A stretch of 64,000 nt of DNA, taken from contig NW_021832611.1 in NCBI RefSeq assembly GCF_006345805.1, positions 1-64,000 of the forward strand. Reading direction: 5' to 3'. This stretch comes from Octopus sinensis. Taxonomy: Eukaryota. Under the pieces are notes generated by a model. The model had not been told where the DNA came from. It worked only from the letters and a program-made list of their open reading frames with translations, and did no database searches. Both the position numbers and the translations under genes were made by a program. This document shows positions 15,226 through 39,409 of the stretch, one piece after another. The stretch's first letter is position 1; the number at the start of each line of letters is the position of its first letter.

Positions 15226-15359
15226 TTTTACGTTTAAAATTGCAACAAAATTGAATGCCACACAACCTTTATAATTATATTTTTTTAAGAAATAAAATAG
15301 TGTAAAATATAAAGTAAATTGATTAATAATTAACAAAAATAGAAAATACTATTAGTCTG

Positions 15360-15829: not shown

Positions 15830-16756
15830 CTATTAGTCTGGTCAAATAATTTTATTTATGAAAATAAAATTTCCTACTTATAAAGCTGAGGATTACCGTT
15901 GAATTTTTCAAGTATGAAAGAAAACTGGATTTTTGCTAAAAAGAATTCCAAAAAGATTCAATAATTTCTCATCTTTTGAACGGGAATTTTCATTATTCAC
16001 AGCACCATTCGCTTTTAATGCTTAAATGCAGATAAAAGATTACAAATGAAATTTTTAGAAATCCAATCGTATTCTATACTAAATGCAAAATATTTGGAGG
16101 TTGGAATATCTTATTTCTTTACGCTTCTTTTTGGAAAGTTTAAACTTTAAAAAATTTTCTACCAAAATAATTTCTATGTTGGGTTTGAAAAATGTTTGTA
16201 AACAACTTTTTTTATTTATAAAATTAACAAAAACTGTTCATTGAATACAGCTCACAAATGAAAATTTATCGGCTTTAATTAAAATCGGAATTATGTCAAA
16301 AATATCAATAATTTAGAAGTAGTTTCAAGCACGATATAAAGATGATTAGATTTTCTCATTTTTGTTTTTACTATAAATTCGGCCTTAAAACGAAATTGAT
16401 TTGACACCCTTAGTTTAAATGCTAGGATAGTAAAAACCTGAGTTTCTAATAAATGTTTTAAAATTAACTTTTTGTTAATTTTTATATAAAATACAAGAAT
16501 ATTAATTGGTTTGTTAAGTTTTTCTGACAATTTAAAATTATTGATTAAATTCTAAATTTTCCCATTTCCAAAATCTGCCGTCAATTTGACGGGAACTAAA
16601 AATGGCAAATTTGAGAGATTTAACTGTATATAGATAATCTGCAATGGTAGCAAGTCCAATCCTAAAAGGATTGTTTGCACCTGAAAAAATAGTCTATAGT
16701 CCTTAAAAATTCATCTTTGACCAGTAATAAAAACCCATAAAAAGAATAAAGTTTGG

Positions 16757-17671
16757 TTAGTAAAGGAAAATTTTAATAGCTAGATTAAAGCTATAGTTTG
16801 AATCGAATTCTAAATTAATAACATAAATATTAAAACTTTTCACTGTTTTTAGATTTCATAAGTAGATATTTTTTTCTTTTAAGAATCAACATAAAACAAA
16901 TAAAAGTGATTGTAATCAAAGAAATAATTCCAATAAAGATTATATAATTTTTATTTGATTTCCATAAGGTCTCTGAAATTCACAAATGAAAAAATCAACC
17001 AGGTTTTTTATTAAATGCAACTTCTAAAAATTAAAAAAAGTAATAGCTTACGATCACTTTTAGTTTTACTCTTTGTGGCGGAAACTAAAAGTTTAAAACA
17101 TATAAATCACATGCGCTCGTCGTGGTGGTGGCTAAAATATTTAAACATATAAATCACTTGTAGTTGTGCTCTTCGTGGTGGGGACTAAAATATTAAAACA
17201 TATGAATCACTTGTAGTTGTGCTCTTCGTCGTGGGGACTAAAATATTAAAACATACAAATTACTTGTAGTTTTACTCTTCGTGGTGGTGGCTAAAATATT
17301 AAAACATATGAATCACTTGTAGTTGTGCTCTTCGTCGTGGGGACTAAAATATTAAAACATATAAATCACTTATAGTTCTGCCTACTTGTCTGCAGACTAA
17401 AATATAAAATTTTAATTTTGTTAACCCTTTTTTTTATTTATGTCATTGGAATTTGCATATTTCATTATTTCATTGTCATTATTTCTTCTTTGTCTCTGCA
17501 AAACATGAAAATTTTAAAGCAAACCCTTGGAGGGCCTGTTTGCCAATAATTAATTGTTCGTATATCTTTGATTTCTTTTGAAGCATTTGTTATTTGTTCT
17601 ATACAAATAAAAATGTAAAAATAGATATCACCTGTACATAAAATTAATATTAGAAACAATATGAAAAACAT
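16757..17671 (-). CDS. Type-I membrane mucin-like protein, short paralog (7 micro-exons, 190 aa predicted)
   Basis: Hand-spliced 573-nt open frame: signal peptide MFFILFLILILCT, Thr-rich 27/21-nt exons, TM YIIFIGIISLITITFICFMLIL + KRKK, tail FDSNYSFNLAIKIFLY*; all introns GT-AG, about 26-34 nt. Confidence 0.8.
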
Positions 17672-19439
17672 TATTCTTCACGATAAAAAACTAATTTATA
17701 TTCTTTATAATTCTAATAATTCATTTTTGGCATAGTTGTCGACCTATTATTTATGTAGTTCCGACATTAATTACAGCCGATAAATTTTCATTAAAGATAT
17801 AGACATTAGAACCTTTCTTTTATAAATTAATTATCTGATTAAAAATAAGCTTGCAGAAGTCAACAAGATGCGGAATTATTTTAACAATAGTTGAATGCAT
17901 GTTACAGTATGTCAGAAGTTAAAAAAACATTTCTCGTAATAGAATGGACGATTCCCAGAACTAACGCAAATTAACAAATTTTTTTCTATCCAGATTAATT
18001 GATAATTCTCTTAGTTTTGGAAGTTTTAAAATGATATTCACATCTAGTTACGACCATTTTGTGGGGAAAGACTTTTTTCGATCATTTGTTGAGTACTAGA
18101 GAAACCACAAAGTTTACCTAAAAAGATCGAAAAAATTGACTTCATAAAAATCTACAAAGTTTATCCAAAAAAGAAGAAAATTGACCAAAATGTAGGCCTA
18201 ATAAAAATTTGGAAGATAATTTGTAGGCATTATTTTTTAGAAACATAAATTATGTAGAATCATGTAATATTAGACTTTTTCAGTTTTAACATTTCAGTCT
18301 TTTGTCAACATTTTATTAAAAACAAAAAACGCTTCATCTAATACTCAGTGGTTTGACATTGAACCACTTGAAGCCTTTCCAAAGGCAAAAAAATTCAACA
18401 ATATGTTCTGGAAAAGTCATATTTTAGTAAATAGTTCCCTTCGACTACTATTTTTCTAAAGTTTTAGACGGAAAATTTAAATGACTCGAAAATTGACGGA
18501 AAAATTGCCAAACAAAACCTAAAAAGCTTAAAATTAATTTTTTAACATAAAAATGTATTACATTTTTATAACAGAATAATTATTTTTGAGTTGACTTTGT
18601 CAACTTTTAGTAATTACAGAATGAATGATTCAGGTTCTTATTAATGTAGAAGAAATAGTAAAGCACACACCATTTAAAGGAATGAGAGGACTCTTTTGGG
18701 AAAGATCTCTTGTTTTAAAAAAACGATAAAGTTTAAAAACTAACGAATGCATATCGTTCTTGTTCCAATCAAATACCCAACCGCCGAGTTAGACTTTGGT
18801 GGTCAAAGAGGATTAACCATTGAAATGTTATTTTCATACACATTTTTTAGGTTTATGTCGGTTTATAAGTCTATTTAAACTATACTGTCTGAGAAAAATA
18901 TGCAGGCCAATTCGGTTACTATGTTTTGTGAGAACATCTTTGCAAAGCATTACAGTTCTTTTCTACGCCAACCAAGCCTCATCTGAATTCAAAGCAATAT
19001 CGAAATTTGTTTTCTAACTAGATTATTTGGTTTTTGAATAAACGAATTTCTATCGTTCCATTATTTATATGGTTTATTGTGAGTAGTCTTGATTTTAGAT
19101 TTTTGAAAAGAATTCAACAATCAGTTCAGCAACATTTACAAAACATTCGACCAAAACAGAATGAAGATACAAGTCATATCGGCCTTAACTTTTTTAAATG
19201 ACTGTTTTTCTGAAGAAATATAAAAAAGAACTTTTGACCTATATTTTATAAGGTCGAATTGCTTGACTTAGATTTGAAACGAATCATGCTTAATATATTT
19301 TTTAAATCCGAATTGGACATCTTAGTAACAACTCAGACACAAACAATAGTCATAACTAGCTAATCGAATACAGAGACAGTGGGAAGGAGTCGTTTGTGCC
19401 GATCAGCATAGACTTCTATATCCACTAAGCTAAACGGAT

Positions 19440-19680: not shown

Positions 19681-20370
19681 GGTCTTCCGCAACACCAGTG
19701 TATGCCTTCACCCTATCCTCCACGCCAAGCACCGGCAGATAATTTTTGAAGTATTTTGACACTATTCCGTCCCAGGTCATGACGAAAGGGACGATCTTTA
19801 CCTTCGCCCGGTGGATCACTCCCAGTTCATTTGCTAGCAAGTGGTATTTGTGAAACTTTTCCACTTCGACCTGCTTGAGAAAATTTTGGGAAGTGATCCC
19901 CACCTCGATGAGTATAATTGTGTTGCTCGATTTGTCTTGAACAAATATGCCGGGCTTGTTATTTGGGCTAGCATAATCAGTCGAGAGGTATGTATCGACT
20001 CGGATTTCCACAAATTCATTGCTGGTAACAGATTGGACTGAATGCGTTTTTTAATTTTTTCGACTTTTTATTCCATATTTGCGACATAGATGTAAATGTA
20101 AACATTTGACCACTTCGTTATGGCGTCTAAGGTAGGGACCATTAAGCATTCGCCCATATCTGGTAGCAAGGTGATCGACGGTCTTCTTGGACGAGTTGCA
20201 GTGGCTGCATTTATTCTCTCCTTTGCTGAAAAACAAGTTCCGGTCTTGCAACAGGCACAGATTTGCTTTTTAAGTCCGGGGAGAATTGTTTCCATTAATT
20301 AACCATCCGCAAGCCTCATACACATCAACTTTGGTATCCTTAACAAGAAGTTGGTTCTGGTTTAAAGAGA
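19681..20370 (-). mobile_element. Duplicate of the R4-like C-terminal fragment
   Basis: Near-identical to 5662-6350. Confidence 0.8.
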
Positions 20371-21110
20371 TTCTAGAGATCCGTAAGGGACTTATACAAA
20401 ATGTATCCTAGTGCTTCTAAGAAGAAGTAAAACCCAGAACCTTGTGTAATCTCTCTTGCCAAATATCATTTTGATTATGTTCTAAATATCATTTTAAAGC
20501 CGTTTAATTATGATTTTTTGATAAATTTACAAATTCGAACGATTCTAAACAATCATCCTTTTAAAATGTACTTTTGAATTTTGTAACAATATCTGCAATC
20601 GCGACATTATTCGAAAATCTGAAATATTTCAATAGCTTTGGATAAGATCTTATAGACCAGAGATCGATAAAGGCTAGCTCATCAGCTTTTGGTGACTCTT
20701 TAAATTTCAAGTAGGTTCCTTCAATAAAAATTAAACCAAAATTGATAATACGCGATATTTTTATTAAAATGAAGGGAATCTTTCAAATTTTGAAGATATC
20801 CAATAGGTGACTCACGAAAGAAAGCTATAAAAAAACTTGTCAAAATATTTAGTTTGAGAATTAATTTTTAAATATTGGCAACACAAAAAGGAATCCTCTT
20901 CCGGATTCTTTTTATGAATTAAAAAATTGCATATAGAATTATGACAATTTTTGGGTTCACTATAGATGTAAACAAAGTTTTTCGCATTTGAATCAAATCA
21001 AAATTAAGAAACAAAATTGCAGACCTGAACCTAGAATCAAACCACAAATTAGAATTGACTAGTAACGACCTTATTGAACTTTTGATTTTATTAAGTTAGG
21101 TTAATGAAAT

Positions 21111-21625
21111 TCAGTATATTCGACATTGACACCATTTGGTTTTCTAAATTCGAAATATAAAGACAGTCCTAAACGCGAATTTGGCGCAGGCGACCATTAA
21201 ATCGCTGTCGAAAAACTTCCAAGTACATGTAGATGCACCGGCTATATGATAAATATATCAAAAAATACTATTGTGAATATATTGGGAAGTTTCCTTTTAT
21301 AGTTAAAAGAGATTTTATCGCCTCCCAATGATGGACAATTCTCCAAGAAATAACGACATGCGTTGAAAGTTGTAAAAATAGGAATGTGTTTTGCAATGAC
21401 TGCTTTCGGTTTAAAATTGCTGATTCGTTGGTCTAAAAATAAAATCGCATCTATACATATTGTTAGATTTATTTGTGTCTCTAATTCTTCGCCTGCATAT
21501 ACAATACATGAAGTCATGTTACAATTTTTTACATCAATGCTTGTATGTACCGATCCCTTGTTACAGGGATCAAATGGTATTTGACCACAAGTCACGTTAG
21601 ACAAAATACAACTTGTTATTATCAT
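21111..21625 (-). pseudogene. ML/NPC2-like duplicate; last exon frameshifted as assembled
   Basis: Copy of 7097-7615 with several 1-bp deletions in the last exon (may be sequencing error). Confidence 0.5.
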
Positions 21626-21649
21626 GTTTTATCACAAACGCGAACCTAA

Positions 21650-22300
21650 TTTTTTATTTAACCCAGAATCACCAACAGTTAATTAGGGTAATAATTAGAT
21701 GATTCCAACAATCCTCAAGACCTTTCTCAGCTTTTCCCGATGTTGGACTCTGGACATAACGCAAGTGCGGAACGGGCGGGGAGCAGTTTTTGTGAGGAAT
21801 TGAATCGGGGTGATGTGCTTCTGGTTGTTGAGGTCTTGGTCTTTGGCAGGTGGTCCTGTTGGATGGCTAAGAAACCCTTTCCATCTTTCTTAATAAGGTG
21901 GTCAAGCGGAGTTGGGATAATGTTGTTCAAATTGAAATTTTCGTTATGCTAGCCGCGGCTCGGCATAGTGTAGTCTCAATTTTAAGGCGGTTAACCATGA
22001 GAGATTAGTACCCCATGCGGCGCAGGCTAGCCAATTGTTGGTTCGATGAATTGTTTGTAGAGAGTGCCGAGAGCCGGGAACTGTGTCGGTGTTACTCCGC
22101 TAAAAATTATTTTCAGGAAGACCAGATCAAGCTGAACCTCTGCCTGTTTACAAATGCCCCGTCAAATGCAGCCAGCCACCCGTACAATCTTGTGGAAAGA
22201 TCACCGAGCAAAGATGAAGTCCCTGGTCGAGTGCATCGGGATCACGTGACGTTTATTCGGTTTTTACCGTGGTCTTGGTTAAATAAAATAAAAAATCGAC
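21650..22300 (-). mobile_element. Duplicate of the Vingi-like 3' fragment
   Basis: Near-identical to 7640-8300. Confidence 0.75.
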
Positions 22301-22425
22301 ACTGGTGTGAGTTGGTGCCAAATTTTTTAAACAAGTTCTATTAGATACTCCCTTATACTGATTTTGACTGATAAACACCGTTAAAATTGAAAACTGTTAA
22401 AAGTAAGAAAAAGGGGAATTATTTT

Positions 22426-23091
22426 GGTACTTTTGTCGAAGTGGTCGCAGTTTTTTTAGAAGATAATTAAAATTAATTAATTTTTTTAGTGAAATAGATT
22501 ATTTAATTATAACCCTCTATCAATAATTTAAATGGTTATTAAAATTATTTAAAAATTTATTTACCAATTTAGTCATTTTTAGTACGCGGCATCCAAATTC
22601 CAGGACTGTAGAAGGAATTTATGTCTTTTACAATCTGTGCAAAAGATTCCTTAAGTTCTGTATTTGTTTTCGCCACATAAATTCTGAAAAAATAACTAAC
22701 TAAAAAAACCTGCGAAATAAGATCCCAGATGATGTCTTACAGCTCCTCTTTGAGCTTTATTCTTGCATTTTGCACTTCCCCGTGATTTTGAAAGGATATC
22801 CACATTTTGCAGAAAATGCACTGCATCCTCCTTATTTATTGGGAGCTGTCGGAATGATGTTGCATAAGTCCACAACAGAATTTTCCATGTGACCTATAGT
22901 GCCAGTTTATATCAATATTAGGTACATGCTCGCCATAATATTAAAAAAATTAGAAAATAAATTAGTAAAAAATTTAATAATATTTTAAATTATTGATAGA
23001 GCGACTTAAATAAAATAATATATTCCACCTCAAAAATTATTAGATTTTTTAAAAGGCCTAAAAAAACTGCGACCACTTCGACAAAAGTACC
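22426..23091 (-). mobile_element. 666-bp non-autonomous DNA transposon, Merlin-like
   Basis: TIRs GGTACTTTTGTCGAAGTGGTCGCAGTTTTTT and its complement; 8-bp TSD attatttt; empty site at about 8414-8421; internal EDAVHFLQK resembles a Merlin transposase N-terminus. Confidence 0.85.
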
Positions 23092-23189
23092 ATTATTTTA
23101 ATCCAATTCAAAATATATTACAAAATAAAAATGAATTAATCATTTCAATATGCTGAAAAATAACAAAATGCACATGATACCTGAACACT

Positions 23190-24135
23190 CTAGCACTTGG
23201 AATAGACTCACGATTTACAGAATCGAATGCCTTTTTAACATCAATCCATGGCGAGTAGAGATTGTTCTGATACTCCTTATTGAACATTGATAAATAAGGG
23301 CCTGTTCTTTTGCACCCTGGCATCCCTTTCCCGTTCCCAGCTGGTTATCGGGAAGTAGACCAAATGAATCCACAAAGTCCAATAGTTTTGGTTGACGCAT
23401 TTAGTTACTATCTTATGAAGATTAGCCACGCACGTGATTGACCGAAGATCGTTCAAGGTTTCGCAAACGTTTTTTGAGATCAAATATGTGAATCCAGTAT
23501 AAAACCATTTCCAGGAATGTAACCTCCTCGGACTATTCTGCCAATCTCCTTGCATAGGGGGCCATGCAGCGAATCCATTTTTTTTAATAAAAAAGTTGTA
23601 GACACCATCGCAGCCACTTTCCTTCCAGTCAGGGCCGCACTTGATAATGTTCAGTCAAACTCTTCACTAAATTCGGGCGTCGGAGTCTCATAATCGTCCA
23701 TCGAATAGAGAATTTCGACTTTCCACTCCAAACATTTCTCAATTCATTCGAAGTCATTAAGTTCAATTTAACAACTCAATTTTCACATAGATTCCTATAG
23801 AACCTTCGGTGGTTTAGCGCAAAGCATTTGCTGTACTTTCGGAACTCACTCATCGTTTTGTGAACAGATATTTGTTTCATTCTAAGCCGTATTAAATATT
23901 CAATTAATGATTGAATTCGGGATAGTTCTCCCTTCTTGCATTTCTTATAGGCACATATACACAGCACATCTATCACTTTTTTGCTTTTCGGATATCGGGA
24001 ATGCTTATTTACAGTAGTTTTTCACTATTTCTGATGGTGCATTAAAGTTGTAGTTTTTTTCTCCGTAGCTTTAACCCAGTTAGAACTAGTCCTCTTTTTA
24101 TACGTTAAGTACTGAAATGCTTGCTATTAGTACTG
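23190..24135 (-). mobile_element. Duplicate of the R4-like RT fragment
   Basis: Near-identical to 8500-9470. Confidence 0.75.
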
Positions 24136-24529
24136 ATCTATTGAAAAAAGTATATAATTAAAAAAAACATTTATTTTAATAAAAAATGTTTTAATTGAAA
24201 CAAATAACTGTATCTACACTGGTATTTATTGGATGGAATTTAATAATTGATTTTTAAAAAAAACAAATTTTATATAGTTATTAGTAATAATGATATGTAA
24301 TATTCTTTTTTATCTATATTTATTTATGTATAATATTAAAAAATATTTTTATTTAATGCGGCGAACCTTATCAACAATGGACATTATAGCAAATTTGAAT
24401 ATTTATACACACTAAACCGTTCTTATTCTTCTTTTTGTGGTGTAATTAGATAATTAGACGGTTTGTTAAAATTTCTTATTTATTAATTAAGGCAGTGAAT
24501 CAGTTTTTAATATAAATATTAGTAGGGAG

Positions 24530-27004
24530 ATGCTCTTTTATGGAATAAACCATTTGTAAAACTACCCCAACAAGTGATTTAGAAGACGAAGACGAAATAT
24601 TCGTATGTTGGAGGACAGGAGAAATATTTCGTGATTATGAGAGTTACTATGAACGAGTAATATTGTGCAACAGTCTGGTGTGGGATGTTCTTTGATTGGT
24701 GGAGACGGACTGACTTTAAGCCAGGCAGTTGCTTGTGAGAGTGAATGTCGGAGAGAAGTGGAAGAACTAACAGATCCCGTAATAAAGGGGATATTATATA
24801 CCCGGAATTATTTGATGGGACTGATAAGGAGTCGTTGGTTGACAGTGTGTTTGAATTTGTGAGTGAAGTGCTCTTTGTGGGAGAACCAATCGAATTCCGT
24901 GACAAAGAAGGGAATGGAATACGTGGGAGAGTTAGCAGAGTGGAGAGATTGGGGAGTACTACGCCACTGCAGATGGAATAACATATCTGGCATATTCCCC
25001 ACGGAGGATGATTGAATCTGTCACCAAGAGGAGAGTTGGGCTGTGTTTAAGTATGGATTGGGAGAATGAAGACCTGGGGAATGTTTTTTCAAATATTCGG
25101 CCAGTAGTTGAGAAGAAAGGACAGTCTAAGGAGGCCAGAATTAGAAGAATTAAACGACTGCAGTCTCATTACTGTTCACATTTACTGACTCCTAATGAAG
25201 ATCTACTTTGCCAAACTTTAAAGCCACTTCCGGACTATTTCCCACTGTCTCCCCTCCTTAGTGAGCATTTGGGAGAAATTATGGCACTTGTTTACTTTGT
25301 TGATATGTTTGATCCGTTTTTGAGGAAATTCGGAGGTGCTTTTGATATTGACTGCGGTAAGAATATGTGAATATATTATAGAATTTGTCGAAAGGGCAGT
25401 TTTGGGAGACAGAGAGCGTATGTTCACATTTACAGGAGAATTGTTGAAGGTGCTCTGGGCCATGACGGGAGTGGACAAGAAGATTGATGTCCCATTTGGT
25501 TTACTTTCTTTTATATTTGGTAGAAATGACGCACAACAACATCTCAGAATTTGTTAGAAAGACTTTTCTTTTGTGTGCGGAGGATAAATGTTCTTCCCAA
25601 CAGTCTGAAGCATTGTTATTGACAAAGACGTGTGTATTTTGCTCATTGGAATATGAGGACATGCACTCATTTCCTTCTGAACAAAAACTACTCCTTCTAT
25701 CCTACCTTGTCCAAATTATTTCAGCACATCCACACTTTCGTCCTCATCTGGAGGCACTCAATAAAGACATTATTGCCCTCAACAAGGAAATGGCTGCTCT
25801 CACGGCAGATGAGGCCATGAAAATGATCAAATACAACAGAACAACTAACCAGATCAATCACGTCAAAACTGTTGGCAGGAAAGGCAAATGGTGGGATGAG
25901 AGTTCGGAGGACTCCGACGATCCGAACGAATCAAGAAGGGATTATAAACTCGCTAAAATACACAAACGCAAAGAACAAATCAAGACACAACTTGACAAGT
26001 ATAACAATATTCAGTTATTGGGAATGGACAGACTATATAGGAAATATTATTTATTCTCACATGCTCTCTTTGTCGAGATTACTCCAAAAGCAGTATTTCT
26101 ATTACAGTCAGTCATAGAGATATCTTTCTCGCCATAAACGAGTCAGACAACTTACGATTGATCCCACACTGAGACTTGGCAACAATTTGCCAATCGGTTT
26201 TCTCTCAATTTCAAAGATCCTCCTCACCCTCCACTCTCTTTTCAAGATGAGTTTGCCTCACTTATCACTCCTGTTTTTGATAACCCCGTTCCTCTCGACG
26301 GACTGCCTACATGGTCTGTTATACCAGACGAAGAAACATTAACTTTGTTGATGGACTCACTCAGTACAACTGGCGTGCGGGAGATTGCATTAAAGAAGGC
26401 ATTGATTAAAAATAGAGACAACATAAAATTCTCTACTCCCATCCCAGTCCATGTGCAAACTATATCTCCCCCAGTCATCTCACAGCTGGCCTACATGTCT
26501 TCTTTACTTACTCCAGATATAACTCACCAAATTCAGACTTCACTTGAATCTCTCTCACTTCTCCCCCACAGACAACAAGTCACTCCTCTCGCCAATGCAT
26601 TTGCGACTGTTGTACAGTCTGCCATTCCACAATCCATGCTTCCACCCTTTGGCACTGCACTCAAAACTAGGAGGGGACGTAGATCCTCCGCGAAAAGACT
26701 GTCTCCTCTCCAGGATTGTGATTTTATGCAGTCTTGGATAACTCAGTTGAAACAAGTCACAAATATGTCCCAGATTGCCACAATGCTGAGTTTATTCCAA
26801 CGCCATGTTTTGTGGGACTGTCCAACCACTGTTTACTGCAAGTCTTGTCGGAAACTCAGAAAGTACGGGCTCGTCTTAACCTGTTCTGTTTGCTCATCTT
26901 ATTACCACTCGGACTGTCTTCTAGATCATCCCATGGTTGTTTTTTTACATTACTTGTAGAATAGCAATGTTCCCTGGGTGTGTAATCAATGTGTTTCACA
27001 CTAA
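24530..27004 (+). pseudogene. BAZ1A: BAZ1A duplicate; frameshifted in its 5' part as assembled
   Basis: About 1% substitutions versus 9971-12450, plus several 1-bp deletions within 24530-25000; may be intact if these are errors. Confidence 0.65.
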
Positions 27005-27295
27005 TATATTACATTTATATATTTGTTTTATTGATACTTTATTGTGAATATAAACGCAGACAAAACAGAATGAAACAGTATAGCGTAGGGAGATTTGTCA
27101 ACGTATAAATTTGTAAAAGAGAATATGCAAATTTACTTATATGTTGGGAAATTAGCAGACTGGATAGAGATTAGAAACAAATAATATCTGTCTGGAATAT
27201 TTTATAAATTATGGTTATTGCGATAAAGGACGTGTTTTTGACATATTTTGTGTCTTGAAAATAGCTCAACAAAATCTGATAAAAAATAAAGAGTT

Positions 27296-28061
27296 CTACT
27301 TCATGAATATGCTGATATTTCTCAAAAACCTAAGATAAATAAAAAATAAAAAAACCTGCATTCGCAGCCGTCGGCACGATATCTTGAACAAAAGTAAAAA
27401 GAAGTTCATTTTCTAAATACTCCTTAAACATGTCAGGTTTAAATTTCAACTTAAAATAATTATTTTTGCCATAGTCTAATAGAATAAATAAATAATATTA
27501 CAGAAGATTTGTAATTTTTCTCATAACTTTCCATGGCTGAATTTCGATAATAAGAATTCCACCTGGCAACAAATCAGCATAAATTCTCTGAAATGCTATT
27601 CGAAGACCTTCGTCGCCATTCACAAGATGAATCCACTTTGTGATACTCAAAGCCATAATAACATCATATTGCTTCTTTGGAATATATCCGTCAATACTAT
27701 CGATAACATAATTTTCCTAAAAAAAAAATAAAATCTATACGTAACAGAATGATATATTCGATGGAAATGATTCATTTCTATTATTGTTGGGATTAGAAAT
27801 GCTGCGTGAGGCTCTTAGAATAAGTGATTTGTCAATATCTATTCCAAGGATATGTCGTGGTTTGAATCTTTTAGCAATCATAATAGTAATATATCCAACG
27901 TTGCAGCCAATGTCCAATATATTTTTGTCTTTAAACCACTCACATTTCATAAGTGATAGTCTCGGATCTTCATTATTCTGAATTCTGTATCCATAATAAC
28001 GATCGTAATTCCCATATGGAAAATATTTTTTCTTTGTTTTTTTCTTATTAATATTAGTCAT
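27296..28061 (-). pseudogene. MEPCE: MEPCE duplicate; 1-bp deletions as assembled
   Basis: Copy of 14456-15225 with single-base losses at about 27326 and 27531. Confidence 0.65.
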
Positions 28062-28209
28062 TTCTACGTTTAAAATTACAACAAAATTGAATGCCACACT
28101 ACCTTATTAAATTATATTTTTTTAGAAATAAAATAGTGTAAAATATAAGTAATTGATTAATAATTAACAAAAATAGAAAATAATATTAGTCTGGTTAAAT
28201 AATTTTATT

Positions 28210-28232
28210 GTTAGGGTTAGGGTTAGGGTTAG
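28210..28232 (+). repeat. Interstitial telomeric tract G(TTAGGG)3TTAG
   Basis: Read directly; sits at a deletion junction relative to unit 1. Confidence 0.85.
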
Positions 28233-28849
28233 TAAAAAATTTTCTAACAAAATAATTTCCATGTTGGGTTTAAAATGTTTGTAAACAACTTTTTTTATTT
28301 ATAAAATTAACAAAACTGTTCATAGAATACAGCTCACAAATGAAAATTTATAGGCTTTAATAAAGTCGGAATTATGTCATAAATATCAATAATTCAGAAG
28401 TAGTTTCAAGCACGATTAAAAGATGATTAGATTTTTTATTTTTGTTTTTATATAAATTCGGCCTTAAAACGAAATTAATTTGACACCCTTAGTATAAATG
28501 CTAGGATAGTTAAAACATGAGTTTCTAATAAATGTTTTAAAATTAACTTTTTGTTAATTTTTATATAAAATACAAGAATATTAATATTGATATATTAATT
28601 GGTTTGTTAAGTTTTACTGACAAATTAAAATTATTGATTAAATTCTGAATTTTCCATTTCCAAAATCTGCCGTTAATTTGACGGGAACTAAAAATGGCAA
28701 ATTTGAGAGATTTAACTGTATATAGATAATCTGCAATGGTAGCAAGTCCAATCCTAAAAGGATTGTTTGCACCTGAAAAAAATAGTCTATAGTCCTTAAA
28801 AATTCATCTTTGACCAGTAATAAAAACTCATAAAAAGAATAAAGTTTGG

Positions 28850-31800
28850 TTAGTAAAGGAAGATTTTAATAGCTAGATTAAAGCTATAGTCTGAATCGAA
28901 TTCTACATTAATAATATAAATATTGAAACTTTTCACTGTTTTTAGATTTCATAATTAGATATTTTTTGCTTTTAAGAATCAGCATAAAACAAATAAATGT
29001 GATTGTAGTCAAAGAAATAATTCCAATAAAGATTATATAATTTTTATTTGATTTCCATAGGGTCTCTGAAATTCACAAATGAAAAAATTAACCAGGTTTT
29101 TTATTAAATGCAACTTCTAAAAATTAAAAAAAGTAATAGCTTACGATCACTTTTAGTTTTACTCTTCGTGGCGGAAACTAAAAGTTTAAAACATATGAAT
29201 CACATGCGCTCGTCGTGGTGGTGGCTAAAATATTTAAACATATAAATCACTTGTAGTTGTGCTTTTCGTGGTGGGGACTAAAATATTAAAACATATAAAT
29301 CACTTGTAGTTGTGCTCTTAGTGGTGGGGACTAAAACATTAAAACATATGAATCGAATCACTTATGATTGTGCTGTTCGTGGTGGGGACTAAAATATTAA
29401 AATATATGAATCACTTGTAGTTGTGCTTTTCGTGGTGGGGACTAAAATATTAAAACATATAAATCACTTGTAGTTGTGCTCTTAGTGGTGGGGACTAAAA
29501 CATTAAAACATATGAATCGAATCACTTATAGTTGTGCTGTTCGTGGTGGGGACTAAAATATTAAAATATATGAATCACTTGTAGTTGTGCTTTTCGTGGT
29601 GGGGACTAAAACATTAAAACATATGAATCGAATCACTTGTAGTTATGCTTTTCGTGGTGGGGACTAAAATATTAAAACATATAAATCACTTTAGTTGTGC
29701 TCTTAGTGGTGGGGACTAAAACATTAAAACATATGAATCGAATCACTTATAGTTGTGCTGTTCGTGGTGGGGACTAAAATATTAAAATATATGAATCACT
29801 TGTAGTTGTGCTTTTCGTGGTGGGGACTAAAATATTAAAATATATGAATCACTTGTAGTTGTGCTCTTAGTGGTGGGGACTAAAACATTAAAACATATGA
29901 ATCGAATCACTTATAGTGTGCTGTTCGTGGTGGGGACTAAAATATTAAAATATATGAATCACTTGTAGTTGTGCTTTTCGTGGTGGGGACTAAAATATTA
30001 AAAAATATAAATCACTTGTAGTTGTGCTCTTAGTGGTGGGACTAAAACAATTAAAAAAACATATGAATCGAATCATTATAGTTGTGCTGTTCGTGGTGGG
30101 GACTAAAATATTAAAATATATGAATCACTTGTAGTTGTGCTTTTCGTGGTGGGGACTAAAACATTAAAACATATGAATCGAATCACTTGTAGTTGTGCTT
30201 TCGTGGTGGGGACTAAAATATTAAAACATATATATCACTTGTAGTTGTGATCTTAGTCGTAGGGACTAAAATATTAAAACATATAAATCACTTGTAGTTG
30301 TGCTCTTAGTGGTGGGGACTAAAATATAAAAACATATATATCACTTGTAGTTGTGATCTTAGTCGTAGGGACTAAAATATTAAAACATATAAATCACTTG
30401 TAGTTCTGCTCCTTGTCTGCAGACTAAAATTAAAAAATATATATCACTTGTAGTTGTGGTCTTAGTCGTGGGGACTAAAATATAAAACATATAAATCACT
30501 TGTAGTTGTGCTCTTAGTGGTGGGGACTAAAATATTAAACATATATATCATGTAGTTGTGATCTTAGTCGTAGGGACTAAAATATTAAAACATATAAATC
30601 ACTTGTAGTTGTGCTCTTAGTGGTGGGGACTAAAATATTAAAACATATATATCACTTGTAGTTGTGATCTTAGTCGTAGGGACTAATATTAAAAACATAT
30701 AAATCACTTGTAGTTCTGCCTACTTGTCTGCAGACTAAAATATAAAAAATATATATCACTTGTAGTTGTGGTCTTAGTGATGGGGACTAAAATATTAAAC
30801 ATATAAATCACTTGTAGTTGTGCTCTTAGTCGTGGGGACTAAAATATTAAAACATAAAACACTTGTAGTTTTACTCTTAGTGGCGGGGACTAAAATATTA
30901 AAACATATATATCACTTGTAGTTGTGGATAGTGATGGGGGACTAAATATTAAAAAATATATCACTTGTAGTTGTGCTCTTAGTCGTGGGGACTAAAATTA
31001 AAAACATATAAATCACTTGTAGTTGTGCTCTTAGTGGTGGGGACTAAAATATTAAAAACATATATATCACTTGTAGTTGTGATCTTAGTCGTAGGGACTA
31101 AAATATTAAAAAACCATATAAATCACTTGTAGTTGTGCTCTTAGTGGGGGGACTAAAATATTAAAACATATATATCACTTGTAGTTGTGATCTTAGTCGT
31201 GGGGACTAAAATATTAAACACATATAAATCACTTGTAGTCTGCCTACTTGTCTGCAGACTAAAATATAAAAAAATATAATCACTTGTAGTTGTGGTTTAG
31301 TGATGGGGACTAAAATATTAAAAAATATAAATCACTTGTAGTTGTGCTTTAGTCGTGGGGACTAAATATTAAAAAATATATCACTTGTAGTTGTGATCTT
31401 AGTCGTAGGGACTAAAATATAAAAAACATATAAATCACTTGTAGTTGTGCTCTTAGTGGTGGACTAAATATTAAAACATATATATCACTTGTAGTTGTGA
31501 TCTTAGTCGTAGGACTAAAATATTAAAACATATAAATCACTTGTAGTTCTGCCTACTTGTCTGCAGACTAAAATATAAAAATATATATCACTTGTAGTTG
31601 TGGTCTTAGTGATGGGGACTAAAATATTAAAACATATAAATCACTTGTAGTTGTGCTCTTAGTCGTGGGGACTAAAATATTAAAACATATATAAATTGTA
31701 GTTGTGATCTTAGTCGTAGGGACTAAAATATTAAAACATATAAATCACTTGTAGTTGTGCTTTAGTGGTGGGACTAAAATATTAAAACATATATATCACT

Positions 31801-34800
31801 TGTAGTTGTGATCTTAGTCGTAGGGACTAAAATATTAAACATATAAATCACTTGTAGTTCTGCTACTTGTCTGCAGACTAAAATATAAAAAATATATATC
31901 ACTTGTAGTTGTGGTCTTATGTGTGGGGACTAAAATATTAAAACATATAAATCACTTGTAGTTGTGCTCTTAGTCGTGGGGACTAAAATATGAAAAAACA
32001 ATATATCACTTGTAGTTGTGATCTTAGTGTAGGGACTAAATATTAAAAAATATAATCACTTGTAGTTGTGCTCTTGTGGTGGGGATAAAAATATTAAACA
32101 TATATATCACTTGTAGTGGTGATCTTAGTCGTAGGGACTAAAATATTAAAACATATAAATCACTTGTAGTTGTGCTCTTAGTGGTGGGGACTAAAATATT
32201 AAAACATATATATCACTTGTAGTTGTGATCTTAGTCGTAGGGACTAAAATATTAAAACATATAAATCACTTGTAGTTGTGCCTACTTGTCTGGGGACTAA
32301 AATATAAAAATATATATCACTTGTAGTTGTGGTCTTAGTCGTGGGGACTAAATATTAAACATATAATCACTTGTAGTTGTGCTCTTAGTGGTGGGGACTA
32401 AAATATTAAACATATATATCACTTGTAGTTCTGATCTTAGTCGTAGGGACTAAAATATTAAAACATATAAATCACTTGTAGTTGTGCTCTTAGTGGTGGG
32501 GACTAAAATATTAAAACATATATATCACTTGTAGTTGTGATCTTAGTCGTAGGGACTAAAATATTAAAACATATAAATCACTTGTAGTTCTGCCTACTTG
32601 TCTGCAGACTAAAATATAAAAAATATATATCACTTGTAGTTGTGGTCTTAGTGATGGGGACTAAAATATTAAAACATATAAATCACTTGTAGTTGTGCTC
32701 TTAGTCGTGGGGACTAAAATATTAAAACATACAAAACACTTGTAGTTTTACTCTTCGTGGCGGGGACTAAAATATTAAAACATATATATCACTTGTAATT
32801 GTGGTCTTAGTGATGGGGACTAAAATATTAAAAATATATCACTTGTAGTTGTGCTCTTAGTCGTGGGGACTAAAATATTAAAACATATAAATCACTTGTA
32901 GTTGTGCTCTTAGTGGTGGGGACTAAAATATTAAAACATATATATCACTTGTAGTTGTGATCTTAGTCGTAGGGACTAAAATATTAAAACATATAATCAC
33001 TTGTAGTTGTGCTCTTAGTGGTGGGGACTAAAATATAAAATATTAAAACATATATATCACTTGTAGTTGTGATCTTAGTCGTAGGACTAAAATATTAAAA
33101 CATATAAATCACTTGTAGTTCTGCCTACTTGTCTGCAGACTAAAATATAAAAAATATATATCACTTGTAGTTGTGGTCTTAGTGATGGGGACTAAAATAT
33201 TAAAACATATAAATCACTTGTAGTTGTGCTCTTAGTCGTGGGGACTAAAATATTAAAACATATATATCACTTGTAGTTGTGATCTTAGTCGTAGGGACTA
33301 AAATATTAAAACATATAAATCACTTGTAGTTGTGCTCTTAGTGGTGGGGACTAAAATATTAAAACATATATATCACTTGTAGTTGTGATCTTAGTCGTAG
33401 GGACTAAAATATTAAAACATATAAATCACTTGTAGTTCTGCCTACTTGTCTGCAGACTAAAATATAAAAAATATATATCACTTGTAGTTGTGGTCTTAGT
33501 GATGGGGACTAAAATATTAAAACATATAAATCACTTGTAGTTGTGCTCTTAGTCGTGGGGACTAAAATATTAAAACATATATATCACTTGTAGTTGTGAT
33601 CTTAGTCGTAGGGACTAAAATATTAAAACATATAAATCACTTGTAGTTGTGCTCTTAGTGGTGGGGACTAAAATTTAAAACATATATACACTTGTAGTTG
33701 TGATCTTAGTCGTAGGGACTAAAATATTAAAACATATAAATCACTTGTAGTTCTGCCTACTTGTCTGCAGACTAAAATATAAAAAATATATATCACTGTA
33801 GTTGTGGTCTTAGTGATGGGGACTAAAATATTAAACATATAAATCACTTGTAGTTGTGCTCTTAGTCGTGGGGACTAAAATATTAAAACATATATATCAC
33901 TTGTAGTTGTGATCTTAGTCGTAGGGACTAAAATATTAAAACATATAAATCACTTGTAGTTGTGCTCTTAGTGGTGGGGACTAAAATATTAAAACATATA
34001 TATCACTTGTAGTTGTGATCTTAGTCGTAGGGACTAAAATATTAAAACATATAAATCACTTGTAGTTGTGCTCTTAGTGGTGGGGACTAAAATATTAAAA
34101 CATATATATCACTTGTAGTTGTGATCTTAGTCGTAGGGACTAAAATATTAATACATATAAATCACTTGTAGTTCTGCCTACTTGTCTGCAGACTAAAATA
34201 TAAAAAATATATATCACTTGTAGTTGTGGTCTTAGTGATGGGGACTAAAATATTAAAACATATAAATCACTTGTAGTTGTGCTCTTAGTCGTGGGGACTA
34301 AAATATTAAAACATACAAAACACTTGTAGTTTTACTCTTCGTGGCGGGGACTAAAATATTAAAACATATATATCACTTGTAATTGTGGTCTTAGTGATGG
34401 GGACTAAAATATTAAAAATATATCACTTGTAGTTGTGCTCTTAGTCGTGGGGACTAAAATATTAAAACATATAAATCACTTGTAGTTGTGCTCTTAGTGG
34501 TGGGGACTAAAATATTAAAACATATATATCACTTGTAGTTGTGATCTTAGTCGTAGGGACTAAAATATTAAAACATATAAATCACTTGTAGTTGTGCTCT
34601 TAGTGGTGGGGACTAAAATATTAAAACATATATATCACTTGTAGTTGTGATCTTAGTCGTAGGGACTAAAATATTAAAACATATAAATCACTTGTAGTTC
34701 TGCCTACTTGTCTGCAGACTAAAATATAAAAAATATATATCACTTGTAGTTGTGGTCTTAGTGATGGGGACTAAAATATTAAAACATATAAATCACTTGT

Positions 34801-35210
34801 AGTTGTGCTCTTAGTCGTGGGGACTAAAATATTAAAACATACAAATCACTTGTAGTTGTACTCTTCGTGGCAAAGACTAACATATTAAAACATATAAATT
34901 ACTTATACTTGTAGTTCTGCCTACTTGTCTGCATACTAAAATATGAAATTTTAATTTTGTTAACCCTTTTTCTTATTTATGTCATCGGAATTTGCATATT
35001 TTATTATTTCATTGTCATTATTTCTTCTTTGTTTCTGCAAAACATGAAAATTTTAAAACAAACCCTTAGAGGGTCTGTTTGCCAATAATTAATTCTTCGT
35101 ATAACTTTGATTTCTTTTGATTCATTTGTTATTTGTTCTATACAAATAAAAATGTAAAAATAGATATCACCTGTACATAAAATTAATACCAGAAACAATA
35201 TGGAAAACAT
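28850..35210 (-). CDS. Type-I membrane mucin-like protein, long paralog (~109 micro-exons, ~1100 aa predicted)
   Basis: Three 5' exons (signal peptide) end in phase 1 and join 27-nt exons (IPTTKSTTT, IPTTKITTT, ICRQVGRTT and others), then a 24-nt exon, TM exon and tail; some units carry 1-bp indels. Confidence 0.78.
29150..34935 (-). repeat. 53-bp tandem array (27-nt exon + ~26-nt intron) with higher-order periodicity
   Basis: Minus-strand unit TCCCCACCACTAAGAGCACAACTACAA|gtgatttatatgttttaatattttag; 53-bp period measured at 33244-33297. Confidence 0.95.
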
Positions 35211-35290
35211 TATTCTTCACGATAAAAAACTAATTTATATTCTTTATAATTCTAATAATTCATTTTTGGCATATTTGTCGACCTATTTTA

Positions 35291-38150
35291 GCGCGCGTCA
35301 TGTGGTTCACCTTTTCTGGTGGCGCCGGATACAGTCCTAAACGGTATCTAAAAAGAACCATTTGCTCCCCGCCAACCAGAGGACTTCCCCCTGGACGGCA
35401 TCTTCTCAACGTTGGCACTTACTATCGATTGTTGCTGTTGACCTCAGGTGACGTGGAACAGAATCCCGGTCCAAAGCTAACAATACAATGCCTGAATATT
35501 GACGGGATTCGAGGAAAGACGGCGGAACTTGCCAGTTTTTTGGAGGAGAACCGAATAGATATCTGTCTTCTCCAAGAGACGAAACTTTCGAAACGGATCC
35601 CTACTCCTCTTTTTGCTGGATACGATGCACTACGATGTGACCGCGAGTCGGAGCATGGAGGGGGTCTACTGACCCTTATAAAAAGAGGAATAAAATATTT
35701 CGAGAATCCCTTACCGTATACAAGCCTAAAGAAGGACTCCAACACCGAAATAATTGGAATCTCACTTATGACCTCCTACGGAAGACTTGAAATCGCCAAT
35801 GTCTACGTACCTCCCCCAGGTTCATGCAAGAAGGGCTATCGTTTTGACCTATCAAGCCTTGATAAATTGGATAACTTACTCTTATGCGGAGATCTGAACG
35901 CGAAGCATCCCGCTTGGTTCAGATATCAGACTGCCGATGCCAGAGGAAACCTTTTGATATCGCAATTGCAGAAGTTAATAATCCTTAACAACCCGAAAAA
36001 GAACACTCGAACACCCTACAACTCTAAGGACACGAGGACATCGCCAGATCTATCAATCTGCTCACCTCGGCTTTCCCCTATCATCAAATGGTCGGTCCGC
36101 TATGATCTCCGAAGTGACCACCACTCAATGATAATGAGAATGAACTGTTCTCCACATCTCATACTGAAACCAAATTTTTCTATGATTACGAAAACGCAGA
36201 TTGGAATGCTTTCGCAAATTACGTCGATTCAAGACTCCAGAACTTTCACCCTAAGAATTTTTCTTCCTTGGACAGGGCAGTGGAAAGCTTCAACAAAACT
36301 ATCATAGATGCAAGAAATTTGATTATCAGAAGAGCATGTATAAGAAGTGGGAGCTCAAAATATGACTCAAGAACGAAAAATTAATCAGAGAAAGAACCCC
36401 TCAAGAAAAGAAAGTATCGACCCAAAGTAATCATCGATCGAATCAGGGCTCTAAACATGCTTATTACGAATAATACCAACCAAGTCCAAAGGAAGAAGCT
36501 CAGCCGAATCTCTAGAGCCATGAATAAACAAGCCTCTATTTCGGCCATGTGGACGATGTTGAGACGCTTAAAGAATCCTGACGAGCGTAAAACAGAAACA
36601 TATCAGCTCAATCTAAACAATTTTATGAAACACTGTGTCAAGATTAGTCATATTCCTTATAAAAAAATGAACTCACAGTCAAGATTAAAATCAAAGCCAT
36701 CCAAAAGGCCCCGACGACTTATTTTCTTCCTGAAGAGGTGTCTGAAACAATCTCGAATCAGAAGAAAACAAACTCATGTGGACCGGATGGAATTCCGCTT
36801 ATTCTACTAAAACACTTGGGCCCAGTTTCAATAAATGCTTTAACCACGATCTATAACACATCATTATTCACGAACTCTATACCGAACTTATGGAAACTAT
36901 CAAAAATCCGGCCAATATTAAAACCTGGAAGACCGAAAACGACCCGGCTCCTATAGACCAATATCCCTTATATGTGTGCTGTCAAGAATCTTGGAAAAAC
37001 TGGTTCTAAAACATATTCGCCCTTTCCTCCCACAATCCACATTTCAACATGGATTCAAGGAAGGATTGTCAACGACCTCCTTCCTCACCACACTAACAGA
37101 TTTCATAAATGAAGGACACAAAAGAAGAAATTGCAGGAGAAATCAATTGTATGCACTATCGACATTCAAAAAGCGTTTGACTCCGTCCCAAGGAAGATCC
37201 TAATTCAAAAGATATTTGGTACAATATTTCTACACCTATGAAGCTATGGATAGCGAATTTTTTGAGCGGACGTCGTGGGAAAGTGTGCGTCGGGAACGAG
37301 AGTTCAAGATCACGCTTTTTGCCCAATGGTGTACCCCAGGGTTCTCCTTTATCCCCGACCCTCTTCAACTTGTTTCTGAATGATCTCCCGGTTCCTATGG
37401 ATAATAATGACATACTACTCTCCTATGCCGATGACATAGTTGTCGCATCAAGGGATGTAAATGTCGAATACGCGAAGGAAAGACTACAAAGAATACTGGA
37501 CGAATTATATGGATGGCTATATGAAAACAGACTACATGCATGTTCCGAAAAGTCAGCAGTCACCCTATTCACGAAAAACAGGAAGATGGGGACGAAAATT
37601 ATTGAAGTCACGCTGAATGGAGTCCCAATACCACAAAAGAAAACACAGAAGATATTGGTGTAACGTTTGACACTTTCCTCTGTTCTCACCTCATGTTGAA
37701 TCAATCGTGTCAACTTGTATAAAGAAAATCAATTTTGTGAAAGCCTTTCTTTCGAACTGTGGGAGAACTTGTCCGCCAGGGGTAGAGACCCTTTACAAGC
37801 AGTATATCGAGCCAACAATAGGCTATGCATGTGCTGCTTGGGGCTGTAACCTGGCGGCAACGAACCAACTAAAAATCGAGAAAATCCAAGAAAAATCCAT
37901 AAACATACTGAAGGACCATACCGACATGAAAATTGTCCATCGAACACTGGAGTCTCTTGTAGAGGCAAGTGGGAGGGATCGTGGAGATGGACCACAAGCA
38001 TTTCACCGTACATACAGAAAGTGTGTGGGGTCACGGTCTGAACATCGTGAAAAGATGGCTAGACTGTTGAGAAGTGTCGGAATCACCTGAACACGTTAGT
38101 TAATGGTTAAGACGGTGATTCTGTTTTTGGCTTAAATAATAATAATAATA
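35291..38150 (+). mobile_element. Full-length Ingi/Vingi-like LINE (2A peptide, APE endonuclease, RT, no RNase H), frameshifted
   Basis: GDVEQNPGP, LQETK, GDLNAKH, SDH, PQGSPLSP and YADD motifs; (AAT)n tail; empty site at about 17746-17752. Confidence 0.92.
35295..35360 (+). ncRNA. HDV-like self-cleaving ribozyme fold at the LINE 5' end
   Basis: P1 GCGTC/GGCGC, P2 TGGTTC/GAACCA, P3 ACC/GGT, GG linker, P4 ATAC/GTAT and J4/2 CTAA, in the canonical order. Confidence 0.65.
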
Positions 38151-39409
38151 TTATTCATGTAGGTCCGACATTAAAGCCGATAAATTTTTATTAAAGATAT
38201 AGACATATAGAACCTTTCTTTTATAAATTAATTATCTGATTAAAAATAAGCTTGCAGAAGTCAACAAGATGCGGAATTTTTTTAACAATAGTTGAATGCA
38301 TGTTACAGTGTGTCAGAAGTTAAAGAAACATTTCTCATAATAGAATGGACGATTCCCAGAACTAACGCAAATTAACAAATTTTTTCTATCCAGATTAATT
38401 GATAATTCTCTTAGTTTTGGAAGTTTTAAAATGATATTCACATCTAGTTCCGACCATTTTGTATGGAAAGACTTTTTTCGATCATTTGTTGAGTACTAGA
38501 GAAACCACAAAGTTTACCTAAAAAGATCGAAAAAATTGACTTCATAAAAGTCAACAAAGTTTATCCAAAAAAGAAAAAAATTGACCAAAATGTAGACCTA
38601 ATAAAAATTTGGAAGATAATTTGTAGGCATTATTTTTTAGAAACATAAATTATGTAGAATCATGTAATATTTGACGTTTTCAGTTGTAACATTTTGTTTT
38701 CAGTTGTAAGTCTATTTAAATTATACTGTCTGAGAAAAATATGAAGGCCAATTTGGTTAGTATATTTTGTGAGAACATCTTTGCAAAGCATTACAGTTCT
38801 ATTCTACCAAGCCTCATCTGAATTCAAAGCAATATCGAAATTTGTTTTATAACTAGATTATTTGGTTTTTGAATAAACGAATGTCTACTGTTCCACTATT
38901 TATATGGTTTATTGTGAGTGGTCTTGATTTTAGATTTTTGAAAAGAATTCAACAATCAGTTCAGCAACATTTACAAAACATTCGACCAAAACAGAATGAA
39001 GATACAAGTCATATCGGCCTTAACTTTTTTAAATGACTGTTTTTCTGAAGAAATATAAAAAAGAAATTTTGACCTATATTTTATAAGGTCAAATTTCTTA
39101 ACTTAGATTTGAAACGAATCATGCTTAATATATTTTTTTTATTCCGAATTGGACATCTTAGTAACAACTCAGACACAAACAATAGTCATAACTAGCTAAT
39201 CGAATGCAGAGACAATGGGAAGGAGTCGTTTGTGCCGATCAGCATAGACTTCTATATCCACTAAGCTAAATAATTTATTTTATTGATAGAATTAATATAA
39301 TAATCATTGATTATCAAGTTATTTCTAGTGTCTGTTTTTGTAATTTGTAATATTTTGATACATCAACTTCATCCTCTTAGGGCCTACGCTAAGTGCACGG
39401 ATGGACAGA

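Follow-up and report, generated by a model that had tools for sequence, protein, structure and literature searches.

Several described genes share part of their design with the locus reported here. MEG-14, a micro-exon gene (MEG) of the Schistosoma oesophageal gland, encodes a protein of the host interface that starts with a signal peptide, continues with a central, hydrophilic, T/P-rich repeat region made of micro-exons, for which heavy O-glycosylation is predicted, and has one C-terminal transmembrane (TM) segment of 22 aa. In SmPoMuc, a 27-bp exon coding for a 9-aa mucin repeat lies in a tandem exon-plus-intron genomic unit of ~1 kb, which is present in up to about 20 copies with microsatellite separators. 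The iterated exon-intron modules of spider Flag reportedly evolve in concert. Vertebrate MUC1 is a type I protein in which a short cytoplasmic tail is combined with a tandem-repeat rod rich in Ser, Thr and Pro, whose number of repeats varies greatly. Here we describe a tandem array of 53-bp units found in positions 1-64000 of the 427,924-bp contig VCDQ01013128.1 of the Octopus sinensis assembly GCA_006345805.1 (this stretch of 64,000 nucleotides is referred to below as the window). We propose, with a probability of roughly 0.6, that the array consists of tandem exon-plus-intron units inside a dicyemid micro-exon gene, and that the defects of this long gene copy are most likely long-read errors.

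Structure of the 53-bp array

The boundaries and the period of the array were determined with Tandem Repeats Finder, which returned a single tandem array at 29146-34912 (period 53, 109.3 copies, 84% matches). The units were then parsed at their acceptors on the minus strand, and the following feature was obtained:

29117..34935, minus strand, micro-exon array of 110 units, each with a 27-nt phase-1 exon and a GT..AG intron of 23-34 nt

The exon part was 27 nt long in 88 of the 110 units, 25-26 nt in 18 and 21 nt in one; in three units the donor was lost and the exon end was undefined. Of all units, 107 had a GT donor and 109 an AG acceptor. Overall, 88 units were fully canonical and 22 were defective. 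The intron parts followed the pattern GT..TTTTAG; they measured 23-34 nt and were most often 26 nt long (63 units). Base composition differed strongly between the two parts, with A 41%, C 36%, G 9% and T 14% in the exon parts and T 56%, A 28%, G 15% and C 1% in the intron parts. The switch was sharp at the proposed exon/intron borders, and the same trend was seen in the non-array exons and introns.

Translation of the exon parts gave nine residues per 27-nt exon. The commonest peptide was IPTTK[S/I]TTT, and the types comprised IPTTKSTTT, IPTTKITTT, IPITKTTTT, ICRQVGRTT, IPATKSKTT and IPTTNSTTI. Phase 1 was the only phase without stops across all unit types. Phase 0 was closed by TAG in the ICRQVGRTT type and by TAA in the IPTTNSTTI type, and phase 2 by TAA or TAG in the IPTTK types. 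The canonical array exons were symmetric (27 nt, or 21 and 24 nt, phase 1-1); the 18 exons of 25-26 nt are exceptions and probably represent errors. Length variants that recurred in two or more identical units were all intronic (23, 25, 26 and 31 nt), while the exon stayed at 27 nt. Among them, a duplication of GATTC (gaatc on the plus strand) occurred in seven units and lay in the intron part every time. These results agree with the initial annotation of the sequence, which had read the 53-bp unit as a 27-nt exon plus a gt..ttttag intron of ~26 nt, counted ~109 units, named phase 1 as the sole open phase, and placed symmetric exons and an intron-confined gaatc duplication in the array.

The unit types were arranged in higher-order repeats of the form abcded(e), with abf inserts and five ghe repeats at the 3' end. 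The repeat containing Cys and Arg (ICRQVGRTT) occurred as a spacer, one per higher-order repeat of about six units. Neighbouring units were nearly never of the same type (lag-1 identity 0.02), and a super-repeat of ~30 units was visible as 74% identity at a shift of 1584 nt. An exact search for the 53-bp unit in metagenome contigs gave zero matches.

Flanking exons and the predicted protein of the long gene

The array is flanked by exons that, together with it, form the following gene model:

35234..35248, minus strand, two overlapping TATAAA motifs, 24-38 nt 5' of the long-gene ATG; putative core promoter
35171..35210, minus strand, exon 1, 40 nt, MFSILFLVLILCT; hydrophobic and signal-peptide-like, ends in phase 1
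35138-35170, minus strand, intron of 33 nt between exons 1 and 2
35064..35137, minus strand, exon 2, 74 nt, with a NES sequon (NAS in the paralog)
35035-35063, minus strand, intron of 29 nt between exons 2 and 3
34965..35034, minus strand, exon 3, 70 nt, ends with ...NKKK and G, phase 1
34936-34964, minus strand, intron of 29 nt between exon 3 and the array
29093..29116, minus strand, 24-nt exon, KVAFNKKP, phase 1-1
29066-29092, minus strand, intron of 27 nt between the 24-nt exon and the last exon
28908..29065, minus strand, last exon: ETLWKSNKN, TM helix YIIFIGIISLTTITFICFMLIL, then KSKKYLIMKSKNSEKFQYLYY and stop; the tail has a YxxPhi-like YLIM
28865..28870, minus strand, ATTAAA, candidate poly(A) signal ~40 nt past the stop

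The upstream exons translate as MFSILFLVLILCTEQITNES...NKKK with an end in phase 1, and the 3' end reads KVAFNKKP-ETLWKSNKNYIIFIGIISLTTITFICFMLILKSKKYLIMKSKNSEKFQYLYY followed by a stop. Predicted splice junctions are AAGAAAAAGG joined to TATGCAG between exon 3 and the first array exon, ACAACTACAA joined to TCCCCAC from unit to unit, and AAAACCTG joined to AGACCCT between the 24-nt exon and the TM exon. The predicted N-terminus, MF[S/F]ILFL[V/I]LILCT in the two copies, has a mean Kyte-Doolittle hydropathy of 3.2. The TM window reaches 2.83 on the same scale and is followed by KSKK in the long gene and by KRKK in the paralog. The repeat domain contains 50% Thr, 9% Pro and 4% Ser. Very short exons (up to about 36 nt) make up ~90% of the coding sequence of the long copy, i.e. 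~110 x 27 nt plus 24 nt of ~3.3 kb. The predicted product thus has the plan of a membrane-tethered mucin, with a signal-peptide-like start, Ser/Thr/Pro-rich tandem repeats, a single predicted TM helix and a short tail.

The initial annotation had likewise called a membrane-mucin gene. The upstream exons (35210-35171, 35137-35064 and 35034-34965) do end in phase 1, and the signal-peptide/mucin/TM architecture stands at the level of the sequence. Two statements about the 3' side need correction: the array does not run straight into the TM exon, as the 24-nt exon (29116-29093) intervenes, and the in-frame exit from the array is not present as assembled, where the reading frame of the long copy breaks off at 263 aa.

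A short paralog with an intact frame

Self-comparison of the window revealed a tandem duplication, and a second, much shorter version of the gene, which the initial annotation had missed, was found in its first copy:

5662..19434, duplication copy 1, with an unknown gene, a BAZ1A-like gene (plus strand), a methyltransferase (minus strand) and the short mucin gene (minus strand)
19681..39270, duplication copy 2, with the long array and a long interspersed nuclear element (LINE)
16830..17671, minus strand, short mucin paralog: 12 exons, 11 introns of 26-34 nt, intact open reading frame (ORF) of 177 aa

The exon lengths of the paralog are 40, 74, 70, 27, 27, 27, 27, 27, 21, 27, 24 and 143 nt. The predicted protein consists of a signal peptide, an N-terminal segment, seven mucin micro-exons (VCRQVGRTI-IPTTKSTTT-TTTTKSKTT-IPTTKSTTT-IPTTKSTTT-TTTTTSA-FSATKSKTK), KVAFNKKP, a TM helix and a KRKK tail. 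The spliced coding sequence of 534 nt had no internal stop, and none of 20,000 shuffles was stop-free; the unspliced gene contained 18-21 stops per frame. Micro-exons account for only 39% of this coding sequence (207 of 534 nt).

All non-array exon and intron boundaries are common to the long and the short copy, with no indel in 592 nt, and the in-frame 21-nt exon is the sole exon length variant that both share. In the predicted signal peptide and TM helix, the paralogs differ by S>F, V>I and T>I, all of which preserve hydrophobicity, and the N-x-S sequon is retained despite an E>A change. TATAAA motifs are present in both copies (17695-17709 in the short paralog), and ATTAAA is kept in the paralog near 16772-16777. 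We regard the intact spliced ORF of the short paralog as the best support for the proposed gene model. The presence of 7 and 110 array exons in neighbouring copies documents a change in array length.

Probable dicyemid origin of the contig

A POLG gene located at 47282-48337 (plus strand) and onward served as a control for intron size. Its exonuclease domain was split between ORFs and gave two partial matches of 40 and 102 bits. After removal of three GT..AG segments, one match to PF18136 covering positions 2-282 of 282 was obtained with 299 bits. The removed segments are:

47574-47595, plus strand, POLG intron, 22 nt
47735-47760, plus strand, POLG intron, 26 nt
47957-47983, plus strand, POLG intron, 27 nt

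The array introns match the POLG introns here in size, as the initial annotation had noted. The POLG fragment was at most 42% identical to any database protein, and its best matches were animals; the low identity suggests a very fast-evolving lineage.

Among animals, such short introns have been reported only from dicyemids and myxobolid myxozoans. The median intron of Dicyema sp. is 27 bp, and two thirds of dicyemid introns are shorter than 30 nt. Dicyema japonicum inhabits the renal sac of O. sinensis and has a LINE-rich genome with 36.7% GC, 49% repeats and a mean intron of 38 bp (Lu et al.). The window has a GC content of about 30-35% and contains ORFs for a LINE endonuclease and reverse transcriptase (RT). 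The array introns fit the dicyemid type, being GT..AG with a mode of 26 nt vs. the published median of 27 bp. Gene structure in the window is unlike that of octopus. Given the POLG introns of 22-27 nt in a contig of the O. sinensis assembly, it is very likely that the contig is DNA of a dicyemid kidney parasite co-assembled with its octopus host, an origin that the initial annotation had not recognised. A ciliate or apicomplexan source was considered and rejected, since the standard code gives intact ORFs and since a POLG exonuclease of animal type and a BAZ1A-like gene are present.

An identical LINE ORF was found on the 509-kb contig VCDQ01001009.1, where it is named 'uncharacterized protein LOC115229065 [Octopus sinensis]' by NCBI. 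Parasite sequence thus seems to have been annotated as host. No report of parasite sequence annotated as O. sinensis was found in the searchable literature, and the 21-kb locus of VCDQ01001009.1 (369041-390174) contained no comparable micro-exon array.

Observations that weigh against the gene model

A number of observations weigh against the interpretation of the array as part of a dicyemid gene. The gene model is read from genomic sequence alone. The spliced frame of the long copy is open for 263 aa and is first broken by a 26-nt exon at 33822; its defects comprise 18 exons of 25-26 nt, three units without donor and one without acceptor. Indels in the array are only about two-fold rarer in exon than in intron parts, and the LINE is inserted about 78 nt 5' of the long-copy ATG. 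More than 200 spurious splice paths were obtained in the POLG test, and hydrophobic pseudo-peptides and GT..AG pairs arise easily where DNA is AT-rich. Public annotation calls just two genes in 21 kb and none over the mucin locus. The 177-aa paralog protein had no homolog at E <= 0.01 among 5.8 billion proteins. Measures of selection give weak signals of constraint. Identity between the paralogs is 94.7% in exons and 97.8% in introns (Fisher p = 0.12), and their 14 nonsynonymous and 7 synonymous changes, array exons included, are roughly neutral. The codon-position test of the exon types was made with 36 substitutions inferred on a minimum spanning tree. Read in phase 1, 23 of them were nonsynonymous and 13 synonymous vs. 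26% synonymous by chance, which is not significant. Finally, a stop in phase 1 would arise from just 2% of random substitutions, so that the absence of stops within unit types counts for little when taken alone.

With only two genes called in 21 kb, the annotation was evidently unable to model such introns. The identity of at most 42% in the POLG control indicates a database without close relatives, and the absence of a homolog therefore says nothing about expression; the protein database appears to hold no dicyemid data. Pfam scans of both conceptual proteins gave only sub-threshold compositional matches, to the T. cruzi-type Mucin (E = 0.14) and to TMEM154, and a SEA domain was not found. 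Nothing was found in Rfam over 15.5-39.5 kb, nor in the literature on dicyemid mucins or tandem exon arrays. For SmPoMuc-type parasite surface genes, near-neutral or exon-biased divergence has also been reported, so the selection statistics cannot discriminate between the readings here. As far as the sequence allows a judgement, the coding case rests on architecture and not on selection statistics: two diverged copies with a common exon skeleton, canonical introns of the size usual in the organism, a base composition that changes exactly at the borders, and introns as the sole site of recurrent length variants.

State of the long copy

The canonical 27-nt exons are distributed unevenly along the array:

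34935-32450, minus strand, zone A, 27-nt exons in 45 of 47 units
32449-30266, minus strand, zone B, 27-nt exons in 28 of 41 units
30265-29146, minus strand, zone C, 27-nt exons in 15 of 21 units

In zone B, 49 singleton indels stand against 23 substitutions. Most of these indels are deletions of a single nucleotide; copies of the higher-order repeats do not share them, and the order of unit types is undisturbed. A similar pattern was seen outside the array. There, 1-nt deletions, the majority of them located in short runs of A or T, make up the main difference of copy 2 from copy 1, and of the 34 gaps between the copies 30 are bases that copy 2 lacks. In one segment of 1,051 nt there were no mismatches vs. 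five gaps, and in another of 2,759 nt three vs. 14. The BAZ1A WAC exon is intact in copy 1 (9971-10816, plus strand) and matches Pfam; in copy 2 (24530-25370, plus strand) it is broken by five 1-nt homopolymer deletions and four substitutions. As this one-sided, deletion-dominated pattern resembles an unpolished long-read consensus and not mutation, we consider it likely that the frame and splice defects of the long copy are uncorrected errors of the long-read assembly.

The strongest competing explanation takes the defects as real. Only the short paralog would then work, and the long array would be a runaway satellite-like expansion in a decaying duplicate that yields a truncated product of ~267 aa at most, or nothing. 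It accounts for the 22 defective units of 110 and a frame closed after 263 aa, for frame-breaking deletions throughout copy 2 with BAZ1A included, and for a LINE 78 nt 5' of the ATG. It would also explain why indels are not strongly depleted in exon parts and why the nonsynonymous-to-synonymous ratio of the paralogs is close to neutral. Against decay of this kind, the deletions are one-sided, in copy 2, and the counts of 14 gaps vs. three mismatches and five vs. none fit the profile of long-read consensus errors and not that of mutation. The defects are singletons clustered in the middle of the array (32450-30270), while the first 47 units are 96% intact. Moreover, the higher-order repeats keep their order, and the long copy has undamaged TATA-like motifs and no defect in any exon or intron outside the array. 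We therefore regard the decaying duplicate as unlikely.

Predicted splicing of the array

Unit-by-unit splicing of a long copy that is undamaged in the living parasite, with removal of ~114 introns, is a tentative prediction from the genomic sequence, to which we give somewhat less than an even chance. It competes with the explanation that the gene is real and the array is not spliced per unit: most units would be skipped, or the whole array would leave the transcript as a single long intron or in stochastic blocks. The expected products are heterogeneous and short, like that of the 7-exon paralog, and the 110-unit length would have little meaning at the protein level. With near-identical donors and acceptors and phase 1-1 exons, any pairing of sites would stay in frame, and the 7-exon version suggests that a short rod may suffice. 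Transcripts of SmPoMuc differ widely in repeat number, and the mean intron of 38 bp in D. japonicum exceeds the median of 27 bp in Dicyema sp., which implies some longer introns. Nevertheless, where two thirds of introns are shorter than 30 nt, the nearest acceptor, 26 nt away, should be strongly preferred to any that lies at least 79 nt away, and we consider wholesale skipping quite improbable.

A plain non-coding satellite, with the signal peptide, TM helix and splice sites as AT-rich coincidence, would agree with the lack of a homolog or annotation, the weak constraint statistics, the ease of finding spurious GT..AG paths and the typical satellite higher-order structure, but it is very improbable because the 12-exon skeleton, all splice sites and the open frame have been preserved without an indel in two diverged copies, the ORF was obtained in 0 of 20,000 shuffles, composition switches exactly at the boundaries, length variants are limited to intron parts, and intron sizes match those of verified introns nearby.

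Duplication and neighbouring features

The LINE lies next to the long gene:

35288..38148, plus strand, non-LTR (long terminal repeat) retrotransposon with APE endonuclease and RT; head to head with the long gene and absent from copy 1

The two duplication copies have diverged in mosaic fashion: substitutions amount to 0.1-0.7% in the part with BAZ1A and to 2.5-5% in a stretch of about 3 kb that surrounds the mucin gene, from about 16.2 to 19.4 kb. Gene conversion, fast evolution and balancing selection are candidate causes. Two segments occur in copy 1 only, 12712-14426 (~1.7 kb) and 15359-16148 (~0.8 kb). An ORF similar to class I S-adenosylmethionine-dependent methyltransferases lies just downstream of each mucin copy (27735-28097 and 14899-15336, both minus strand). 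The two copies might also be two haplotypes falsely assembled in tandem, and the 7- and 110-exon arrays would then be alleles; this is less likely, since the join of copy 1 to copy 2 requires a spanning read.

Elsewhere in the window, a leucine-rich-repeat ORF at 53210-53665 (plus strand) may be what the initial annotation had called TBCE. A further RT ORF lies at 59140-60888 (plus strand). A long run of ORFs on the minus strand (43239-46550) coincides with the most GC-rich part of the window (0.40-0.47); the five ORFs scanned there had no Pfam match. Near the ends of the window, a 383-bp repeat is present at 170-552 and 60108-60490 with 91% identity.

Proposed expression and function

If the long copy is expressed as proposed, transcription would start from the TATA-containing promoter, and splicing by intron definition would remove ~114 introns from a pre-mRNA of 6.3 kb, one per 53 nt. 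The product would be a type I membrane protein of roughly 1,100 aa. Its N-terminal part would comprise the signal-peptide-like start and a segment of 48 aa. The ectodomain of ~990 aa, 50% of which is Thr, would presumably form an O-glycosylated rod with a Cys/Arg spacer about every six units. The C-terminal part would consist of a TM helix of 22 aa, a basic stop-transfer sequence and a tail of roughly 20 aa with the YxxPhi-like motif. The peripheral cells of dicyemids are bathed in host urine and are active in endocytosis (Lu et al.), and a likely role of such a protein would be a glycocalyx or adhesion coat on these cells. As all array exons are of phase 1-1, unequal crossing-over or exon skipping would alter the length of the rod and keep the frame.

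Should this interpretation prove true, it would mean that a satellite-looking sequence can be a protein-coding gene that is invisible to standard annotation. The array would be an extreme splicing substrate, with 27-nt exons and 26-nt introns alternating about 110 times, and would put the handling of such exons by the spliceosome to a natural test. A 27-nt exon between 26-nt introns is a unit probably smaller than the spliceosome footprint. To our knowledge, the long copy would be the most intron-dense gene described if it is spliced unit by unit. Shifts of the mucin rod from 7 to 110 repeats by unequal crossing-over would offer a route to rapid surface variation, and the gene would supply a candidate dicyemid surface molecule at the interface with host urine, where the biology is poorly known. 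The analysis also draws attention to probable parasite contigs of considerable size in an octopus reference assembly that is widely used; at least one of their ORFs is annotated as an O. sinensis protein.

Comparison with known systems

The analogy with schistosome genes drawn in the initial annotation is apt and closer than was claimed there, as it extends to the protein plan of MEG-14 and to the 27-bp exon of SmPoMuc in a tandem repeat. With MEG-14 the predicted protein shares a signal-peptide-like start, the T/P-rich micro-exon repeats and the single 22-aa C-terminal TM segment, and as a parasite protein it would likewise be placed at the host interface. The differences lie in the introns, which measure hundreds of bp in schistosomes vs. 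about 26 nt here, and in the far fewer repeat exons of MEG-14, which are not placed inside a satellite-like 53-bp unit. The phylum is also different. No homology to a schistosome MEG family was detected, either in the protein search at E <= 0.01 or among Pfam families.

The genomic organization resembles that of SmPoMuc. Both systems have a 27-bp exon for a 9-aa mucin repeat within a tandem exon-plus-intron unit, a repeat number that differs between clustered tandem paralogs, introns that are more homogenised than exons, and a parasite with a mollusc host. Unlike the ~1-kb unit of SmPoMuc, the unit described here has 53 bp and occurs in ~110 copies without separators. SmPoMuc further possesses a conserved 3' part of 13 exons, with a conserved multi-exon C-terminal domain, whereas the present gene ends with a TM anchor and two 3' exons, and no homology was detected. 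Iterated exon-intron modules that evolve in concert, with introns more homogenised, are also the feature shared with spider Flag. The modules of Flag, however, are of kb scale, contain normal-sized introns without micro-exons and encode a silk, and no homology was detected here either.

At the protein level, MUC1 offers the same type I plan with a Ser/Thr/Pro rod of variable length and a short tail, but its variable number tandem repeat is contained in one large exon with no intron per repeat, and MUC1 has a SEA domain, which was not found here. AT-rich satellites resemble the locus in the head-to-tail 53-bp units, the higher-order repeats and the growth from 7 units in one copy to 110 in its neighbour; in contrast to them, the unit holds a complete exon together with both of its splice sites, and the array stands in frame between predicted signal-peptide and TM exons. 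If the gene is real, the micro-exon and tandem-exon mucin strategy of schistosomes would extend to a second parasite lineage of molluscs, and convergent solutions for a variable glycosylated surface would be suggested. The difference from known tandem-exon genes is one of scale: a module of 53 bp, repeated in ~110 copies, with the appearance of a satellite.

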